Assembly (NCBI GenBank): GCA_943704425.1
Contig: CALSCP010001075.1
Span: forward strand, 1 to 36,645
Reading direction: 5' to 3'
Source of the DNA: Ministeria vibrans ATCC 50519
Lineage: Eukaryota; Protista; Filasterea
Length of the DNA stretch: 36,645 nucleotides
Below, piece after piece: positions 24,004-34,783 of this stretch. The notes beneath the pieces were generated by a model, which saw nothing but the letters and a program-made list of their open reading frames with translations, did no database searches and was not told where the DNA came from. The translations under genes and the position numbers were made by a program. Position 1 is the stretch's first letter. Each line of letters opens with the position of its first letter.

Positions 24004-27000
24004 ATGAGCAGCCCTCCTCCTGGACCAGTGGGTACGTTGAGTCCGACGTGTGCAATTACCCCCCTTGTCGAATGGGGGTGAAATGGGGATTTTTGCAATT
24101 TGTGTGTTTCTACTGCTCTCTTATCGCTACGAGTCTTTGCTGTGATGGCATTTGATTGGTCGTCGACACGCGTACATTAATTGGTGATCGCTTTCGCTTA
24201 TTATTATTACTATTGTTATTTTTTTTTTTTTTTTGTTATTCTGTAGCAACAGATCGCGATGGGCTGCGACGCCACTACCGCCAGGGCCTCATCCTTGCTC
24301 GGTGCGACTACAGCGACCTTGTCGACCCACTCACTGCGAATACAGCGTCGCCGCAGCTGTACTTTGGCCATTTGCCGGGTGCGTTGATTGCCGCTCGAAA
24401 CACTGCCGTTGGGATGCTCCAAAACGGATACGATATTGTCTCCGTGCTCGCCGACAAGCGCCTTACACCAGACGGATCGGTGCCGTTTGGCAATGATCAG
24501 TCGTTCTTTGGCGAGAAGCCGACCGGGTTGACGCCGGAGGAGGAGGCGGAGGAGACGGCCCGCGCGGAGTACGCTGTCGACTCCATCACCAACGGTCGCC
24601 TCTTGTGGGTCGTTAAGCCCAAAGTCCGTCGGGACGCTATCGTCAAATGCATCAACACCCTTGCAACGGCGACGCCCAAGGTTGACAGCACGCTCAAAGG
24701 ACCGGCCGCCGACGACACTGAGCTGACAGTGTACCTTGTTGGACATGGCGTGAAAAACGCGAGTAAACACTTCGCTCTAGCCTTCGACGACATCCGTCTC
24801 GTCTCTCAAGATGCCGTCGTGCGGGTATTTCATGGATATACCATGTTTCAGCTCCTCGAGGACCTAAAACTTGAGACCCGCTGGAAGCATCTTCTCGTCA
24901 TCGCCGACGCCTGCACCGCTGGTGCGGCACTCACCAAGGACTGCTACGTGGCACACAAGGCAGAGACGTTTCTTGATGATGCGTGGACTCTTGCGTACCA
25001 CACGCCGTCGTACCAGCTCATCGGATCATCTCTTAATGCCACGGAGGCGCTGTCACTGCCACCGTGGCGTGGCACCGTGTTCTCAATGGCGATGGATCTA
25101 GTGCTCTGGCGTACATCTCCAACTGCATTTGACAGTGGGTCTGTGGCTGCGCCCTATAACTGGGCGACGGTGGGCCATGTTGTTGTGAAACTGCGCGAGG
25201 GCATGAATAGCGTCATGAAAAGCCTCTTACCCACCGCTGATTATTGTGCACCACCGTGTCTTCATGGTCGACTTGACCTCGCCCACTACTTGGTCGACCG
25301 TCCCAACATAGGCCAATTTCTCTTTGTTCGTCATGGCGCACCTGCTTTGTGGCCGCGCGGTGTTGTAACAACTCGGGTAAGACGTTTTTTTTTTTCATAT
25401 TTGTGCAGTGTGGCAATTCTAATTTTTCTTCATGTGGTCTGCTTGGCAACAGCCGTTTCTTGTCTTGACAGACAACACAGCGTCAACAAACGAAGCACGA
25501 TCTCTAGAGACGGAAAGTGCTGCCGATTCTATTCCACCCGTCCCCTCGACCATACCTCTTCCGCTCACTCTCACCATCAACCACAACCAGGCGCGCCACA
25601 TCCTCATTGTCGTGCCTCAACTCGACACACTGCGTCCGAACGTCCTCGCCGCTCATCGCTGTGGCCTCGACGAACCTCTCGCACCGTTCCGTGAATGGAC
25701 TGGCTTAGATGACAGATATCTCTACAGCCTCTACTGCCACCCACTCACAGCGTCAGTCACATTCATTCTCATTGTGCGCGCCCCATCGCCCGATTCTTGC
25801 GTTGCTCGTCTCGCGCTCCTCTGGCAACCCGACGTGGTTGAGTTTTACCCTGTGGAGACCGGAGAGAGGCTTCCGAATCGTGTGGTTGTTGTGCGCAATC
25901 TCATCACCAACCCACCTCAATCTACTGCGTCGCATTTGCCCCAGAGTGCCTTCAAGAGGCAGCGCCTCTCGCTTGGTGAGACCACTCAACGTTTGGGCGA
26001 TCTGTCACTTCCATCTGCCCTCAGTTCTCTGCGCGTACAACCTACCACACCCGACGACACAACTGTCCGCATCAATGCTTTTCAGGACATGGGCTCTTGC
26101 TCGTGTGGCTGCTGTGCACGCTGCGGCATCCGCCGAGTAGTGATCCTCACCACCTCTGCTGTGAGCTTGACTGCTGCGGAGCGCGTTGACCTGCTCTACG
26201 CCTGCGCAGCTGCCTCTTCTCGCCTGCTGCCTGTTGACAAGCTCACGCAATCTATTTCCTGTTCCAAAACGGTTCGCTTTGAGGCCCTTTTTCGCGATTT
26301 GTGCTCTGAAAGGCTCGCAAAGGAGCGCGACCTACTGCTGCTCGCTCTGCGCGACACACTGTGGTGCAATTCATGTCCGAGCCAAGACATCAGTGCTCTT
26401 TTTCGCTTGCACCATCACCGTCCTGGCGCAGACAACTCCCTCCAGCTCCACTTTGAGGCCCCACCATCATTGCTCTGGTCTTTACTAACCCCAAGCGTCA
26501 GCGCTCTCGTCGATTTTGGCTTCGACCACATCTGCGAGCCTATACCAACATCGTATCTGTCCGTGGCGTTACGAACCCGCGACGCAACTGTCACACAGCC
26601 GCTCTCTCAGGCCGAAATGAGTGACATTGCCGACTCAGTCATTCGTTATTTTCAGTCCACACCCTTTTCTTCTCGCAATGCCACCCTTGCTCGTCGCTTT
26701 CATGCCTCTACTGCTAGCCAGACGATGTTCGTCACTGTGCAACTACCCGACGTGCTCTCTGACAAGGAATACCGCCCCTTGTGCGAACTCCTCGACGGGC
26801 GCGTGTCACTGCCAGCTTTTCGAGGCCGTGCTGTGATGAGTGTTCGGGTCGTGTACGAGGGTGAAGACGAGCATGTGCGTTCCATCGCTGAGGACCTGTC
26901 ACAGTACGCTCGGTCTGTACCTTGCCCCTCCTCTCATAGCCTCCTGCAAGAAGCCTCGGTCATGTACACTTTGGACGACGAAACTGTGCGCCGCGTTGCG

Positions 27001-30000
27001 CTTATCGATGCACTTCGATTTGACCTTGTGGCCACAGTCAAAGTGCTCGCGTTACACATGGAGAACGACTGCCGTCTCATTGATATCGTGACTTACAACG
27101 GTGACGGTGCTGCCGCTATTGCCGCGCGACATGGTGCGTCAACGACTCTTGCTTGGCTGCTCAGCAGTGAATGTGGGGTGCGGCGGGATGTTCAACAGCT
27201 TTTTGAGGCGGCCTTTGATGGGGACTCGGAGAGTGTTGTTGAGTTTATGTACGACCAGTGTGGGCTTGGTCGTGTCTTGACGAGCGACACTGTGAAGGAT
27301 TTGGTGGGTCGTAAGAAGTTTACCGTTGCTGCGTGGGTCTGTACCAAGCTCAAGTTGGAGCTGACTGACTTTGCTGTGGCGACGCTCAAGTCAGTGATGG
27401 ACACCACTCTTGCTGCTCATCGTTGGTCCGACTGGCACGCAGTGCTTGCGCAGCAGTACCTCAAGAAGGCCACGGGCTTGGCGAGGGCCAAAGCGCTCGA
27501 ACACGCGAAAGAGGCACTGCAGTTTGCCTTTGACGATCGTCGGCGTCTGCTTCCCCTCCGTGTGCTTGCCGAACTCAACGAGTGGGACACCATTGTGAAG
27601 TGTTTCAGGTCGGTGATTCGCCGTGTGCACGATAGGGAAATTCGCTTGATTTACGCGTGTGGTCTTTATTGGTCTGGTCAAGGAGAGCGAGCTCTCTCAC
27701 ATCTGCTAGATTTTTTTTCACCGAACAAGCTCGTTGATGATCATTTTGACTCAGTCAAGCCGTGTGACGTGCTTTCTTTGCTCTCACTGGCGCTCTTTGG
27801 GCGCGCAGTTTTGCGGCATGTACCGTTGAGCATGAAAGTGTTTGTTTTGGAGCTGATAGAGGAGGGATTGACGGACGACATGCGTCAGGGCTGCACACAG
27901 TGGCTGTCTGGTGATAAAGGGTCGATGTCTCAGCTGTCTTGGCTTGATTGGACACATCAAGAGCAGATTGCACTTGCTGCTGCGCTCCGTGCAGGGCAGG
28001 ATGATTGGGAAGCCCTGTGTGTTGAGAATGCCACGGCCGATGTGGAAGGCAAATCGATTGTTGCTTGCCAACTTGCGCTTGAGTTGAGTGCGCGCGTTGC
28101 GCAGCGGGAGCATGATGCGAACGGTGTCAAGGGAAATATCTTATCCATGTTGAGTGACGGACTTCACATTGACAATTTACAAGTGCTTGATCTTTCTGGT
28201 GCATTGAGTGGCTCTTTTCCAGCGTGTCTGCTGAGTAACGGTGTGCAGCAACAGCTCAAGATTTTAAATTTGAGCAACAACCAGCTTCGGGAGTTGCCCG
28301 CTGCACTGTTTCAGCCAGCTCAGCAGCTGCTTTGCCTTACCCTCGACAACAACCAGCTTACCCGGTTGCCAACGTCCCTTGGGTGCTGCACCAATCTTAT
28401 TACACTCTCTGTGGCCAACAACCCGCTACTGTCGTCGTTGCCTGAGTCTCTCATACAGCTCAAGTATCTGCGCGAGATCAACTTGGGTGGTGACGTTCTT
28501 CTCGTCGACGTGCAATTGAGTGCTCTTGCGCGCCTGTACGAGTCGTTGCAGATCCTTGTGATGCCACACGAGGAAGGCATGGTTGACGCGGATCCACGTC
28601 TGTGGTGTGCTGAGCAAGCCAGCCACGCTCGTGCGAAATTGGATCATCTTGCACATGGTATGCGCGATTGATGCGAGTGCATGTGTTTCTCACATTTGTC
28701 TAATCTAGATTTGTACACGAAGGCTCAGCGTGATGGGTCATTGTTGATTGGAATCGGGATGACCGTTGTCATTGGTGGCGAGGGGGCATCTGGCAAAACA
28801 ACTTTTTTCCGTGGGATGCTGGGCAAGGACTTTGTGGAGTCACATCGCAAGACGTGGTATGCGTCAGTGTCCTATTGCGACTCGGTTGTCGAGAGGGAAG
28901 GTGAAGTGTCGCTTGTGGAGCATTTCTCTCTTGGGCAACCAAACGGGCGTGTGAACAAGGATGGTCTGGCGGAGCAGTCATGGGAGACTTCTGCTGTGAA
29001 GCGGAAGCTCTTTTTGGATGCACAGCGACGAATTGAGCAAGAGGAGGAAAACGAACGGGAACCTCGAGTTGCTGAGCAGCGTAGCGCACCTCTGTTGACG
29101 ACGGACATGCTCTCAGACAGGTCGATTGGCGTGGAAGAGCGACGTGAACCGGTGGAATCAGAGGCCGAGCCATCACGTGCGTCCGCGCCTTTGGTATCAG
29201 CGGGAAGCGACAGCGTGGGCGGCGACGAGTCGTCACACAACCCCAATGACACTCAGCCACATTCTGTCCCAGCTACAATTTCACAGTCTGAGGTTCCCTC
29301 GAGTGCTGGTGACATGGACGATGATCGTCTCGTGTCATTTTTTGATGGGTATGGCCATGTTGTTGCTGGTGCGCGTCACGCACGTTTGCCCCGCCTGGCG
29401 TTTATTGACTTGGGCGGTCAGAAGGAGTTTCGTGCGGTGCAATCGATCATTCCATTTACATCGTCACTGTACATTGTCGTTGTGGATCTCGAGAAATTGC
29501 ACGCGACACCTACCGAGGAAATGAGCAAACTGGAGAAGTGGTTCTTACTTCCGGCTGCGAAACGTGCACTCACCGTCATGGTCATTGGGACGCACGCAAG
29601 CAGCAGTGGCTACAACTTTGATGCGGTTGATTCTTTTGCGCCTGTTCAAGAGTCTGTCTCTGAGATGCTGCGTCAACACGAGCTGCGGTGGTGGGGGGAT
29701 AAGCCAGTGTGGCCTGTGGACTATGCGAGAGATTTCCGTGTTGACGAGCTGCGTGTGGAGGTGTTGCGTGCCGCCAAAGACGTTGGTGAGCAAGTGCGAT
29801 CGTCGTCTGAGATGGCCAGGGCAGTAGACTCGGTCCAAGTGTGTGTTGCACCGGGCGCTTTGAGTGTGTCTCGTGAAGAAGTGCGGCGGTGCTTGCAGGC
29901 GGAGCACCCGCAGATATCGTTTGGGGGATACGTCCGCGAGGCCAAGCGATTGGGTGCCGCCGTGTTTGATCCGCGTGTGCCAGATCGCGTCTTTGTCGAT

Positions 30001-32384
30001 GTGCCTGGGTTAGTGGATGCTGTGGGGCGCGTGTACAGTCGTGTCCTTGAAGACAAGTCTGTGTTGTCGCCTGTTGACCCTGCTCTTGCGGTGGATGTGG
30101 ACACGTTGCGTGACACTGGTGTGTGGACTGAGGCGCTTGTGGACTGGGCGCTGGGTCACACTGCCGTGCCAGATGGCGAGAGTTTGAAAGAGCTTCTTTT
30201 GAAGTGCCAGGTGCCTCTTGCGCTTGAAGGTTAGATATATGCAAAAAAAAATAGAAAAAAAATAACGAATTTTTCTTTGCAGACCTCCAGCGAGGAAGCG
30301 GGAGCGTTTTGGTGCTGAGCCAGTTTCGGTTTGACTTTCCAGCATTTTCAGAATGGAGGAATCTTTCTGGTGCTATGGGGAGTTTCATTGTCAAAAGCTT
30401 CGCCAAAAGGGGTTATAATTCTGTCGTGGTGTGTGATCAAGCCCCTGTGGACTTTGACCCTGCGACGCATGAGCGACTGGAGTGGTTCACCCTGCCTGCC
30501 ACTCGCCAAAACATTCGCGTGGCCATTGCGAAACTTGCCGAGATGAACCGTGCTGGCGGGTCCACGTCTGCGGTGCACGATGAGCTCATTGTGTATATGA
30601 TGTGTGCGTCTGTCCGGCCGTGGGAGATGGATGTATATGGGGCGTGCATGGGTGATGCTACTTTTGATGGCACTTTGTACAGTGGTGCGTACACACTCGA
30701 CATGCTGCGCGACGATCTTGATGGCGGGAAGGGACCCGATGGGCGATGGGGCAAGACACTGGTGGTGCTGGACACGTCCGACTCTGCGTCAGTATTTGAT
30801 GCTGGCATGCACCCGCGCGTGTGTGAGAGGCTTGGTGGGAGTGTGATGACGGCGGAGGCGAAAGAGCTTTACTCAGAGGAGTCCTTTCAATGTCTTGTTG
30901 CTGCTGGCAGATATAGCTCGGCTTATTTAACCCACGATGAACGTTCAACACACCTTTTTCGCTCTCTAGTCGGTGCTCTGACGAATCCAGGTGTGTGTTT
31001 CACTACGAGTGATTCTTCCGATGCATGGTTGTCGATTGGCGCTTGTTTGGCCTCGATTCGAGAAGTCAACCCGATTCGAGATTTCGGGTACGATCGAGAA
31101 GCCGGGTACCCCATTGTTCCCCAATCTCCAGAACTGCAACGTCTTCCTTGGCATGAATCCACCAATACGGGCGAGTTTCTTATGTTTCATGAGGAGTGGG
31201 ACATTGGTGCTCGCCGTGACGGCGCGGATTTTGATCATCAGTTTACAATGGTGCCGGTATTGTTGCACGAAGTCAAGAATCCTGCTTTTATTTTTCGCCC
31301 TCTTGTACCTCGTGCTGACTCTCCCACGAGCGAGCCCCTGTGCAAGTGGGTTTCTGGCCCTTGTGGTACTGGCAAGACTGTGTGGGTTGCGATGTCCGTT
31401 CGTCGAAGCGAGCAGTTTAAATTTGTTTTGTGGGTCAATGCTGAGTCCGAAGTGACCATCATGCAGTCGTTCCGTGAAGGTGCATGGCTGTGTGGCTTCC
31501 GTCACGGTGTGGAATTTGGGGAGAGTGGTGACTATCAGTTGGGCGATCGCAGCGTGATTGAGTTTATGTTTGAGAAGTTGCGTGAGCATGCCGATTGGTT
31601 GCTGGTGGTGGACGGGTGGGATGATGATTCTGTGGATACGGTGTGGCCTGAGAATGCGTTTGTCAACATCAAAGCGGGTGTCATCTTTACGTCGTGTCGA
31701 CGAAGCATTCCTTTGGTCATTTCGGAGGCCGCTGAGAGAGAGACTGTCACAACTCTAGAGGAAGCAGTTACTCGGGATATGCTGCCAAGCAACACCAATC
31801 CAGATGTGGCACAACTTCTTCAAGAATCGGGACTTACTTCGTTTGCGCAGTCTTTCGCAACGGTGATGGAGTGGTGCCTCTACGAACCTGTGGAGCAGGT
31901 TAACTCACTGCTTCGCGAGATGCGTCGTGGCCGCAATGACACCCACCATCGTGACATCATCGAGCATGCTCGCGAGGTTTGCAATAGTATTGCGTCCCGC
32001 CCACTGCGCTATGCCTTCCGCCTCGGTGGCGAGGCAGCAGTTTTGGCGGTGATGCGAGTGGTTGTGATGCTGCGCGTTCCGTCTGTTCCCGTTGCATTTC
32101 TACGCTTTGCGGTGACAGGGGACGTGCCAGCGCGCATTGTAGAGTTTGACGGTGCCTGCGCGGCACTGGTTGAATACCATGTTTTGGATGAGACAGAGGA
32201 CGATGCGACGTCTGGCACGCACTCCTTCTTCATCCACCCACTCGTGCAACGGCTGTGCTTTCCGCTGGTGTTTGAAGAAGCGGGCTCAAAGGACGCCACG
32301 GTGCGTCAGTTGCGCACCCACTTTGAAGGAGACGAAGTGGACGAGGCACTGGCGCGCGACTGGGCGGACCGGTTTGCTTTGTAA
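24004..32384 (+). CDS. Giant caspase-like / ANK-TPR / LRR-Roc-COR / pseudo-caspase / NB-ARC protein (~2661 aa, 5 exons)
   Basis: Exons 24004-24031, 24247-25376, 25453-28657, 28709-30229 and 30283-32384; all introns GT-AG with matching phases (7986 nt total). Motifs: YLVGHG and IADAC; AAAIAARHG; LxxLxLxxN repeats; GEGASGKTT, DLGGQ, VIGTHA; SGPCGTGKT, LLVVDGWDD, IFTSCR, IHPLVQ. Confidence 0.8.
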
Positions 32385-32738
32385 CTTTTCTGATTAAAGA
32401 TATTAATGTTATTCTATTTTGTGAGGGAAGTATGGAAACCCAGAATCATTTTACATTTGCTTCGGGTCGTCGGCCGTGTGAGATTACACATAAGATTAAG
32501 GACTTGTTGGTATATTTTGTCAATCGCACAAATGCACTTCACACAAACAACCCTACCAACTCAGTGACAAGTGACAATGGACTCACAACTTCAAAGTAAA
32601 AAGTTCAATCACTTCAAACTCATTTAAACTTTACCTTTTTGACACTTGGGCCACTTTGCGTTCCCCAGTCATTGCCCGAGACACACGAGTCTTCCCTGGA
32701 AGCGCAGAAAAAAAACCCCCACAGACCACAAAAGGGCG

Positions 32739-34783
32739 ATGCAACTCTTACTCCTTCTCACGTGCGCCCTCCTCGCCACCACTCGCTCTCAACCGGCGCA
32801 AGTCTTCAGCAGCGACGGAAACTTGACGCTGGCACCGGCGCACAACCGCTCGGTGGTCGTGCACGGCGAGCTTGTCGTTAAGGGCTCCAGGGCGATGACA
32901 TCCGCCGACGTCGACGCCGCCCTGGCCACGCTGGAGGCGCAGATCGGCGCGCTGGAGGCACAGACGGCAGCATGCTCGTGTGCCGCCCCCTCTGCAACGA
33001 CGTCTGCGGTGTTTAACACGACGTGGGACACGACCAAGGTCACCGCAGGCTCAAGCGCACTCGATCAAATTCGGTTGCCGCTCGAAGCAACCGGGTCGTA
33101 CAACTTCACGGTCGTGTGGGGCGACGGGACGCAGGATCGCGTCACGGCACACGATGACGCTGCAGTGACGCACACGTACAGCCAGGAGGGCGTCTATGCG
33201 GTGGTGATTGAAGGCTCGATTGAAGGATGGCGCTTTAACAATGGTGGCGACAAGGCAAAATTGCTGTCGGTGACGCAGTGGGGACCGCTTCGTCTGGGAA
33301 ACAACGGCGGCTATTTCTACGGCACATCGAACATGGAGATTGTCGCCACAGACCTGCTCGACCTGACGAACACAATGGACCTTTCTAGAGCATTTACAGA
33401 TTCGGGCATTGGTGGAGAAGGCAATCTCAACGATTGGGATGTGAGCAAAGTAACAACACCTCCCCCCTCAAACAAAAAGAAAAACAAAAAGAAAGAGAAT
33501 ATGTAGCCAATAAGAATACTGTTGTGATTTAGGTGACGTCGATGACGTGGATGTTTTCGGATGCGAGTTCGTTCGATCAGCCGCTCAACAAGTGGAATGT
33601 CAGTCAAGTAAGATTATTTAATCTTAGTTTTTTATGAACTTGTCTGTTGTCACATTTTGTTTAAAAACTTGTTGGGGTTGACTTTCCCCCTGCTATTTTA
33701 TATATATATTTTTACTGCGTTTAGTTATAAACTCTATCTCTTAATCTGTTCCTGTTTCATCTCACTTTGTTTTATTCCATCTCTTTTATTATTGTTTTTA
33801 AAAATAATAATAAACTCTATCTCGTGTTCTCTTAAAATGTGCCCCTGTTTGTCTCACTCTGTTTATTCCATCTCTTTTAGGTTAGTTCTATGTCTCAAAT
33901 GTTCTTATTTGCTTCCAAATTCAATCAACCACTCAACGATTGGGACACAAGTTCGGTAACAGACCCAAAGAAAAAAACATGTCATTCTTCCTTCAGCAAC
34001 AATAATAATATTAATTTATTAATATTAATTGTACCAAATGGAAACGATAATCACCCAATCAATAATCCATCCAAATACAATAATTATGCAACCACGTATA
34101 ATACGGCACTCAAACTTTCACCCAATAATTCAACAAACCACCCATCAATTTCTACTCTCTTGCACATTTTTCACACTCTCGTGTTGAATTTCAGGTGACG
34201 GAGATGGTTAGTATGTTTTCTGCTGCGTCGTTGTTCAATCAGCCGCTCGACTATTGGAACACTTCTAAAGTACGCAACAGATTATTATTTTGATTAATAT
34301 GATGTTGTGTGTGTATGTGAGAGACTGATTGCTTTTTTTTTTCAGGTTCTTTCGATGAACTCCATGTTTCGACTTGCCTCTGCGTTCAACCAGTCCCTTA
34401 ACAATTGGGACACAAGTTCGGTCAGCACTCACAAACTGGAGAGAATATTATTAATAATTATATTATTTTAATGTTTTTTTTTTGGCTTAGGTCACTGGAA
34501 TGATCCGAATGTTCAATGGTGCGTCTTTGTTTGACCAGCCACTCGACAATTGGGATGTCAGCAAAGTACGACTGATTTTAACACAATTATTGTTAATTAC
34601 TGACTTTGTAACTCCCATTCTTCAAAGGTTTCGGGCATGGACAACATGTTTGAGGGTGCAACTGTGTTCAATCAGGATCTATCGCCGTGGTGTGTCGCTG
34701 GGTTTGGTGCTGCTCCGGTTGATTTTGATACGGATGCTTTGGGGTGGTCTCGGCCGCGACCAGTTTGGGGGACGTGTCCTTGA
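32739..34783 (+). CDS. Secreted DUF285/BspA-type repeat protein with PKD-like domain, 7 exons
   Basis: Signal peptide MQLLLLLTCALLA, short coiled coil, VVWGDGT...THTY, 25-aa repeats VxxMxxMFxxAxxFNQPLxxWDxSx, and C-terminal PVWGTCP. Exons 32739-33449, 33533-33607, 33881-33955, 34195-34269, 34346-34420, 34491-34565, 34628-34783. Confidence 0.9.

Follow-up and report, generated by a model that had tools for sequence, protein, structure and literature searches.

A stretch of 36,645 nucleotides (nt) of the filasterean protist Ministeria vibrans ATCC 50519 (contig CALSCP010001075.1, positions 1 to 36,645 of the forward strand, assembly GCA_943704425.1), here called the window, carries between positions 24004 and 32384 a gene predicted to encode a caspase-like domain, a long middle region, leucine-rich repeats (LRRs), a Roc-type GTPase, a second caspase-like domain, and an NB-ARC-type STAND NTPase. 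This paper describes the structure of the gene, the transcript contigs that bear on its splicing, the assignment of its domains by profile, fold, and paralog comparison, and its relation to known nucleotide-switched proteins. The data revealed that exons 2 to 5 belong to a single expressed and spliced gene, the product of which would combine a GTPase switch of the Roco type and an ATPase switch of the STAND type with a protease domain in one polypeptide.

Gene Structure and Expression

A first-pass annotation of the window had joined four open reading frames (ORFs) and a short first exon into one polypeptide of approximately 2661 amino acids. The ORFs, of 512, 1079, 517, and 691 amino acids, are present at the coordinates claimed for them; the GT-AG introns, recomputed from the sequence, are in frame with the proposed phases of 1, 0, 1, and 1, and the resulting frame counts 2661 codons without an internal stop. 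The features along the window are as follows, with domain names given as predictions.

24004-24031, forward strand: proposed exon 1 (ATG, nine codons, and one base)
24032-24246, forward strand: proposed intron 1 (GTACGT...TGTAG ends, phase 1)
24247-25376, forward strand: exon 2, N-terminal clan CD peptidase domain
25377-25452, forward strand: intron 2 (76 nt, GT-AG, phase 0)
25453-28657, forward strand: exon 3, middle region followed by LRRs
25453-28100, forward strand: conserved middle region of about 880 codons at the start of exon 3, fold not recognised
28120-28657, forward strand: five to six LRRs at the end of exon 3
28658-28708, forward strand: intron 3 (51 nt, GT-AG, phase 1)
28709-30229, forward strand: exon 4, divergent Roc and helical tail
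28709-29710, forward strand: divergent Roc GTPase (G1 GGEGASGKTT, G3 DLGGQ, G4-like GTHA)
29711-30229, forward strand: helical region of about 170 residues at the end of exon 4, possible COR-A
30230-30282, forward strand: intron 4 (53 nt, GT-AG, phase 1), at the joint of the Roc part and the caspase-NB-ARC part
30283-32384, forward strand: exon 5, second caspase-like domain and NB-ARC; stop codon at 32382-32384
30283-31274, forward strand: second caspase-like domain, at the start of exon 5, without catalytic dyad
31275-32384, forward strand: NB-ARC-type STAND NTPase at the end of exon 5 (Walker A GPCGTGKT, Walker B LLVVDGWDD)

The recomputed motif coordinates coincide with those given earlier and place the His (GHG) and Cys (DAC) motifs of the N-terminal domain at 24744-24746 and 24912-24914, the LRRs at approximately 28177-28560, the Roc G1, G3, and G4-like GTHA motifs at 28774-28803, 29407-29421, and 29587, and Walker A and Walker B at 31356-31379 and 31599-31625.

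Four public runs were compared with positions 24420-30400. In contigs of runs X1 and X2, which come from the same study, the junctions 25376/25453, 28657/28709, and 30229/30283 are exactly skipped, each with GT..AG ends, and these contigs tile the region from 24561 to beyond 30283 with no further gaps. Intron 3 is skipped in 2.2-kb contigs of both runs, and intron 4 in contigs of both with 65 letters on the short side. Run X6 covers the same region with introns 2, 3, and 4 all kept, and because these introns are in place it behaves as genomic DNA. A low-complexity insert of about 140 residues in the Roc domain is present in the transcript contigs and is therefore coding rather than a missed intron. 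Exons 2 to 5 are thus joined by introns 2 to 4 in a single expressed, spliced gene.

Paralog searches within the 29.7-Mb genome revealed two other loci, C837 and C2822, with the same modules in the same order, so that the window gene belongs to a three-member family. In exon 2 the first strand of the fold is preceded by no in-frame ATG; the C2822 paralog has a 19-nt ATG exon of phase 1, and an acceptor at the place homologous to the proposed intron 1. Likewise, exon 5 has no Met before the first strand of its fold. Retained intron 3 would bring a stop after four codons, and retained intron 4 a TAG directly after the donor. These stops near the donors of introns 3 (28658-28674) and 4 (30230-30237) mean that retention might give shortened proteins that stop behind the LRRs or behind the Roc/COR-like part, as predicted isoforms with fewer modules.

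One apparent joint in the run contigs, 24739>25161, was considered and rejected as splicing, having TG..AC ends and 21 letters on a side, and being seen in the DNA run too. This joint (24715-24739 / 25161-25181) skips 421 bases, occurs in RNA-like and DNA runs, and has loose ends on both sides; it most likely reflects a contig of a paralog that shares two short identical stretches. A cluster of eight variant sites within 122 bases (25834-25955; four nonsynonymous, four synonymous) is common to X2 and X6 and absent from X1, and could mark either a second haplotype or a tract converted from the paralog of 72% identity.

Domain Assignment

The domain encoded by exon 2 was modelled with AlphaFold2 (AF2) on a 21-sequence family alignment, which gave a predicted local distance difference test score (pLDDT) of 85.7 and a predicted template modelling score of 0.90. 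A fold search was needed for the caspase-like domain since the family profile gave chance-level matches only against PDB sequences (metacaspase-4, E 2.1); single-sequence searches with exons 2, 4, and 5 against PDB sequences likewise gave no meaningful match. The top Foldseek matches of the model were MALT1, PIGK, caspase-7, metacaspase-9, and legumain, with E down to 1e-5, and comparison by VIA with PIGK, metacaspase-4, legumain, MALT1, and caspase-9/-6 gave Z of 16-17.4 and a root-mean-square deviation of 3.1-3.8 Å over 206-244 residues. The intact dyad claimed earlier was confirmed: His166-Gly167 follows strand 158-164, Cys222 follows strand 214-221, and both are conserved in the 21-sequence alignment. 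Paralogs of this family read LDTCHSG at the Cys motif, which we take to be akin to the metacaspase motif.

The fold of the exon 2 domain does not distinguish C13 from C14. Among the 21 family members, Pfam detected Peptidase_C14 in 10 (E<0.1, best E 1.6e-5), C13 weakly in four, and CHAT in one, and in view of these mixed matches the domain was assigned to clan CD, nearest to C14. Caspase-like paralogs score 15-21.7 bits for Peptidase_C14, two of them barely at the gathering cut-off of 21.4 bits. On the basis of the model, the N-terminal domain can with confidence be given a clan CD (caspase/legumain-type) fold, for which peptidase activity is predicted. Four more copies of the exon 2 (active) type, 55-62% identical, are encoded at C2854:788-1888, C334:4132-5241, C2457:8634-9740, and C2170:13130-13714. 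The ORFs that follow them gave no Pfam match and no similarity to exon 3, which indicates that the N-terminal protease has also been joined to other partners.

The middle region of exon 3 shares 72% and 48% identity with its two paralogs. In Pfam it remained without a match up to E 10, the exon 3 profile gave no match to the PDB outside the LRRs and none in a metagenome scan, and no relatives were present in a search of 5.8 billion proteins. The ankyrin-like and TPR (tetratricopeptide repeat)-like helices that had been proposed for this part were not confirmed, Pfam at E 10 having yielded nothing. The approximately five to six LRRs proposed for the end of the exon were recovered, with a Pfam LRR_8 score of 27.6 bits against a cut-off of 27, and over positions 890-1040 the exon 3 profile matches SHOC-2, LRRD1, FLS2, and others with E of 1e-38 to 1e-30. 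Judged by these profiles, the prediction of five to six LRRs in exon 3 is firmly supported.

The Roc-type GTPase of exon 4 passes Pfam marginally, at 27.1 bits against a cut-off of 27 when the Roc-only piece is used, in line with its earlier designation, and the C837 paralog reaches 28.3 bits. A profile built from four sequences finds the Roc domains of LRRK2 and LRRK1 as best among all solved PDB chains (E 3e-4 to 8e-3). An AF2 model of exon 4 from four sequences has a pLDDT of 45, so that its fold matches serve as leads only; among these are LRRK2 Roc (VIA Z 10.4, with the model being of low confidence) and, in Foldseek, 260-300 columns aligned to the Roc-COR of LRRK1/2 and MbRoco2. Moreover, an ESM Atlas feature search with residues 335-506 of exon 4 returned COR-A in all 30 of the 30 nearest named clusters, with a best score of 0.93. 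The "partial COR" of the first-pass annotation is a possible COR-A, with soft leads from ESM Atlas and Foldseek and no match in Pfam and profile-profile tests. Only about 170 residues separate the Roc core from the next domain, and with no room and no Pfam match for it, COR-B appears to be absent.

Canonical Roco genes also occur in the genome, at least six in number (C837:73236-74240, C2679:4780-5781, C1569:2599-3606, C1613:93352-94383, C1711, and C945). Their Roc domains score 62-85 bits (28 bits for the one in C945) and their COR-A domains 35-63 bits, and several have upstream LRRs; C1569, the one canonical Roco gene checked for COR-B, scores 39 bits for that domain. By sequence comparison, the window-type Roc is a separate lineage, far more diverged than the canonical Roco genes.

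The second caspase fold proposed for the start of exon 5 was recognised through paralog C2844, to the caspase-like domain of which it aligns in BLASTP at 1e-30, and falls inside the family alignments, with its dyad lost: MMCAS (30594-30614) stands at the His place and LDTSDSAS (30762-30791) at the Cys place, so that both catalytic residues are replaced. Compared directly by BLASTP, the two caspase-like domains of the window protein show no significant similarity (E 0.23), and their kinship is thus transitive via the paralogs. The NB-ARC-type module that had been assigned to the end of exon 5 found BLASTP support of 8e-9 over 343 residues with the NB-ARC of paralog C519, which itself scores 51 bits in Pfam; NB-ARC paralogs in general score 30-51 bits. 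Its Walker A (GPCGTGKT) and Walker B (LLVVDGWDD) motifs are intact and aligned with those of the family, and at the MHD-type motif, where paralogs read MH.LVQD, the window reads IHPLVQ, with the His kept. The family profile, with the window sequence included, matches AfsR, Roq1, Apaf-1, NRC1, MLA13, and ZAR1. The caspase and NB-ARC segments of the window itself stay under the Pfam thresholds; for that reason both assignments rest on fold and on the clearer paralogs. The LRRs, which precede the NB-ARC by about 900 residues, are the sole repeats of the protein. The next downstream ORF (32643-33503) has weak PKD-domain matches (19 bits) and no TPR, and is predicted from its sequence to be part of a neighbouring surface-protein gene rather than a missing repeat sensor.

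Paralogous Loci and Evolutionary Origin

The NB-ARC that follows the Roc part is kept at all three loci of the family. At C837, the N-terminal caspase-like domain, the middle region, and the LRRs are encoded by one unbroken ORF of 1468 amino acids, in which the parts that flank intron 2 of the window gene are joined without an intron. Its caspase-like domain, with the motifs YIMGHG and LDCCQAG, aligns to the family by hhalign with a probability of 99.7% (E 4e-26). A 59-nt GT-AG intron of phase 1 connects the Roc part to a caspase-NB-ARC-TPR ORF and corresponds in place and phase to intron 4 of the window gene; in this copy the internal caspase-like domain still has its His, and the TPR repeats are kept. 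Within the C837 gene (26333-35158; L030:334-9159), the NB-ARC is 87% identical to that of a stand-alone caspase-NB-ARC-TPR gene (C2824), and the Roc is 48-58% identical to that of the window. This difference in identity suggests gene conversion or a recent module exchange inside the family.

At C2822, a single ORF of 958 amino acids contains Roc, NB-ARC (34.9 bits), and DUF7779, and the Roc-NB-ARC fusion at this locus consequently needs no intron model. In the same region (C2822:46557-52672; L029:558-6673), a candidate 61-nt GT-AG intron of phase 2 (L029:3407-3468) leads in frame to an ORF of 1075 amino acids with a second Roc (GSTGAGKS, canonical GTHLD) and a Peptidase_C14 match of 21.7 bits. 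The predicted C2822 gene may thus encode approximately 3,500 residues, in which a single ATPase is combined with two GTPases and two caspase-like domains.

The family of caspase-NB-ARC(-TPR) genes, to which the second half of the window gene belongs, has at least 20 copies in the genome (approximately 20), and exon 5 derives from it as a fast-evolving offshoot. In a tree of the NB-ARC modules the three Roc-linked copies are not grouped. The very long branch of the window copy makes its placement unreliable, and the tree is accordingly not used to decide between one fusion and several. From the arrangement of the modules we infer that an LRR-Roc-COR gene of the Roco type with an N-terminal protease was joined to a caspase-NB-ARC gene, probably via an intron that removed the upstream stop.

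Relatives outside the Genome

Relatives of the spliced model were sought exon by exon, and in these protein and metagenome searches none was found outside this genome. A phmmer search with exon 4 against 1.84 billion representatives returned a fragment of the same gene only, and word-indexed searches with exon 2, the Roc-NB-ARC ORF of C2822, and the middle region returned nothing beyond a single read-through ORF, which comes from a near-identical strain (P0001). The first-pass annotation had named no described protein with this architecture, and the literature searched agrees, as it contains no protein that combines Roc-COR and NB-ARC. In brown algae, LRR-ROCO and NB-ARC-TPR are handled as separate families (PMC11378527, PMC3341825). 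In bacterial conflict systems, proteins with LRRs, an AP-GTPase (Roc), and COR occur with effectors that include a caspase, and the AP-GTPase is described as having taken the place of the STAND NTPase (Kaur, Burroughs, Iyer, Aravind 2021; PMC8195603).

Discussion

With middling confidence, the gene product can be interpreted as an NLR-like conflict or cell-death protein that arose by fusion of a Roco-type gene and a caspase-NB-ARC gene. Features typical of conflict systems include its expansion to at least 20 paralogs, a paralog divergence of 48-72%, and the 11 nonsynonymous versus 6 synonymous variants between runs. Oligomerization is the means by which STAND NTPases switch on their N-terminal effectors, as in Apaf-1, NLRs, and bacterial caspase-STAND fusions. 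An activation model can be drawn from the behaviour of STAND and Roco proteins, in which a cytoplasmic NLR-like molecule would be kept shut by its LRRs and perhaps its middle region until a trigger causes nucleotide exchange in the Roc and/or the NB-ARC domain. Self-association would follow, with activation of the N-terminal protease by induced proximity, and the catalytically dead internal domain would contribute a surface for regulation or pairing instead of enzymatic activity. The terms "self-contained apoptosome" and "immune or cell-death receptor", by which the gene product had been tentatively described at first, go no further than what we infer from these likenesses.

Several findings weigh against this interpretation. 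On the level of the gene model, exon 1 and intron 1 are candidates, backed by the short first exon of the C2822 paralog, and the transcript contigs are unitigs of 0.5-2.2 kb, none of which covers all exons, so that the joining of all exons in a single molecule lies beyond their reach. The variants amount to 17 sites, a small count with possible cross-mapping of paralogs, and the 11 nonsynonymous among them give a weak hint of relaxed or diversifying selection. Neither of the two caspase-like domains of the gene gave a Peptidase_C14 match in Pfam. The G domain of Roc is split between G1 and G3 by the acidic, low-complexity insert of about 140 residues, and with G1 and G3 canonical its G4 lacks the Asp that specifies guanine; Pfam detected neither COR-A nor COR-B in exon 4 at E 10, and when window-type Roc/COR profiles were compared by hhalign with the canonical Roco genes of this genome the P-loop alone was aligned. 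The NB-ARC module is likewise divergent: exon 5 gave no match to Pfam NB-ARC (cut-off 23.5 bits), the GLPL motif, GMPLAL in paralogs, reads SGLTSFAQ and is degenerate or lost, the composition is odd, and the branch measures 5.59 substitutions per site versus a paralog median of 0.07. Finally, no C-terminal repeat sensor (LRR, TPR, or WD40) follows the NB-ARC, the frame ending about 45 residues past the MHD-like motif.

The divergence of the NB-ARC and the loss of GLPL and of the TPR sensor mean that this module may be a relic or a non-working switch, and on this point turns the main rival explanation, which we regard as rather doubtful. It holds that the gene encodes a Roco-regulated protease with a decaying passenger: the caspase-like domain, middle region, LRRs, and Roc(-COR) would do the work, and the dead-caspase/NB-ARC half would be a degenerating copy, captured recently from a neighbouring caspase-NB-ARC-TPR gene and serving at most as an inert scaffold or dimerization surface, which would leave one working switch. 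The replaced His and Cys of the internal domain, its degenerate GLPL, the absent TPR sensor, and the long branch of an NB-ARC below Pfam significance all fit such decay, and bacterial LRR-Roc-COR-effector proteins work without a STAND module (PMC8195603). However, 699 codons of this half are still open, for which the chance expectation is roughly 1e-15, and the module still has both Walker motifs and the MHD-like His. Moreover, exon 5 is joined in frame by splicing, its expression depth resembles that of the remaining gene, and an NB-ARC follows the Roc part at all three paralogous loci.

If the NB-ARC does work as a switch, a more specific form of the conflict or cell-death interpretation can be considered, which we think unlikely as it stands: Roc and NB-ARC in one chain might form an AND gate on the protease in cis, or provide sequential licensing and oligomerization, with the dead domain as a cFLIP-like pairing partner. 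If true, this would be a eukaryotic design without a described counterpart, in which Roco and STAND switches are wired in series.

Studied eukaryotic Roco proteins act in the cytoskeleton, trafficking, and development, and metacaspases and paracaspases often have roles other than death. It is therefore conceivable, if improbable, that the protein is a cytoplasmic signalling scaffold comparable to the Dictyostelium Roco kinases or LRRK2, in which the caspase-like domain is a module for limited proteolysis or a non-catalytic one in normal regulation; the conservation of the middle region of about 880 residues among the paralogs agrees with this. However, the caspase-like, NB-ARC, and LRR partners and their expansion and shuffling fit the pattern of conflict systems (PMC8195603, PMC7159879), and no orthologue is detectable elsewhere, unlike what is seen for a conserved housekeeping regulator. 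That the locus holds two or more separate genes, with transcripts that overlap or were joined by short-read assembly and no protein of 2661 residues, is very improbable for exons 2 to 5, since even with unitigs this short and a contig comparison confined to positions 24420-30400, three introns are excised exactly, in frame, and with GT-AG ends in contigs with 65-255+ letters on each side, retention of intron 3 or 4 would bring immediate stops, no start precedes the exon 5 fold, and the same joints lie within single ORFs of paralogs.

From bacteria to animals, proteins of cell death and innate immunity repeatedly use two nucleotide switches, the Roco GTPases (LRRK2, DAPK1) and the STAND ATPases (Apaf-1, NLRs), and the literature searched treats them as interchangeable alternatives. 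An expressed protein with both would be a natural system for asking whether they cooperate. The presence of one live-type and one dead caspase-like domain bears on the regulation of active caspases by pseudo-caspases, and the gene as a whole on the building of immune-type receptors in unicellular eukaryotes by exon-level fusion. Moreover, the genome provides a marine protist, outside plants, animals, and fungi, with a diversified caspase-NB-ARC repertoire that has been recombined with other modules.

Comparison with known systems places the conflict or cell-death interpretation among several families. Like LRRK2, LRRK1, and the Dictyostelium and prokaryotic Roco proteins, the window protein has LRRs followed by Roc, and the Roc domains of LRRK2 and LRRK1 are its best solved-structure matches. 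It differs from them in having no kinase, no WD40, and no detectable COR-B, a possible COR-A without a profile match, and the insert of about 140 residues in the G domain; where LRRK2-type proteins carry a "THxD" motif, its G4 region reads GTH-, but without the Asp. Tripartite NLR receptors consist of an effector, a nucleotide-binding oligomerization domain (NOD), and C-terminal repeats, and the window protein lacks a repeat sensor C-terminal to the NOD. It resembles the Apaf-1/CED-4 apoptosome in that an NB-ARC NTPase, the profile of which matches Apaf-1, stands alongside a protease of the caspase fold, and activation by proximity would be the natural model. Apaf-1, however, recruits a separate caspase through its CARD and senses by WD40, whereas the window protein has its protease in cis, lacks both a CARD and any death-fold adaptor, ends without repeats behind the NB-ARC, and carries a GTPase as a second switch.

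The closest known systems are those from which the two halves appear to stem. With the caspase/metacaspase-NB-ARC-TPR (or WD40) STAND proteins, of bacteria, fungi, and this genome, exon 5 shares the domain order (BLASTP 1e-30 and 8e-9 for its two domains), but its copy is without the catalytic His and Cys, the GLPL, the TPR sensor, and a start of its own, and is spliced to an upstream part that contains Roc. With the bacterial conflict proteins (PMC8195603), the window protein shares LRRs placed directly N-terminal to a Roc-type GTPase together with a caspase-like peptidase in one polypeptide, and the proposed role of a nucleotide-switched conflict or cell-death device. In contrast to them, its active-type protease lies far N-terminal, about 1,300 residues ahead of Roc, its COR amounts to a short COR-A at most, the NB-ARC accompanies the GTPase instead of being displaced by it, and the host is a eukaryote, with spliceosomal introns in the gene. 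The caspase-NB-ARC-TPR arrangement is already known from bacteria and fungi and has its approximately 20 copies here; both halves being known architectures, the novelty of the gene lies in their junction rather than in a new kind of system.

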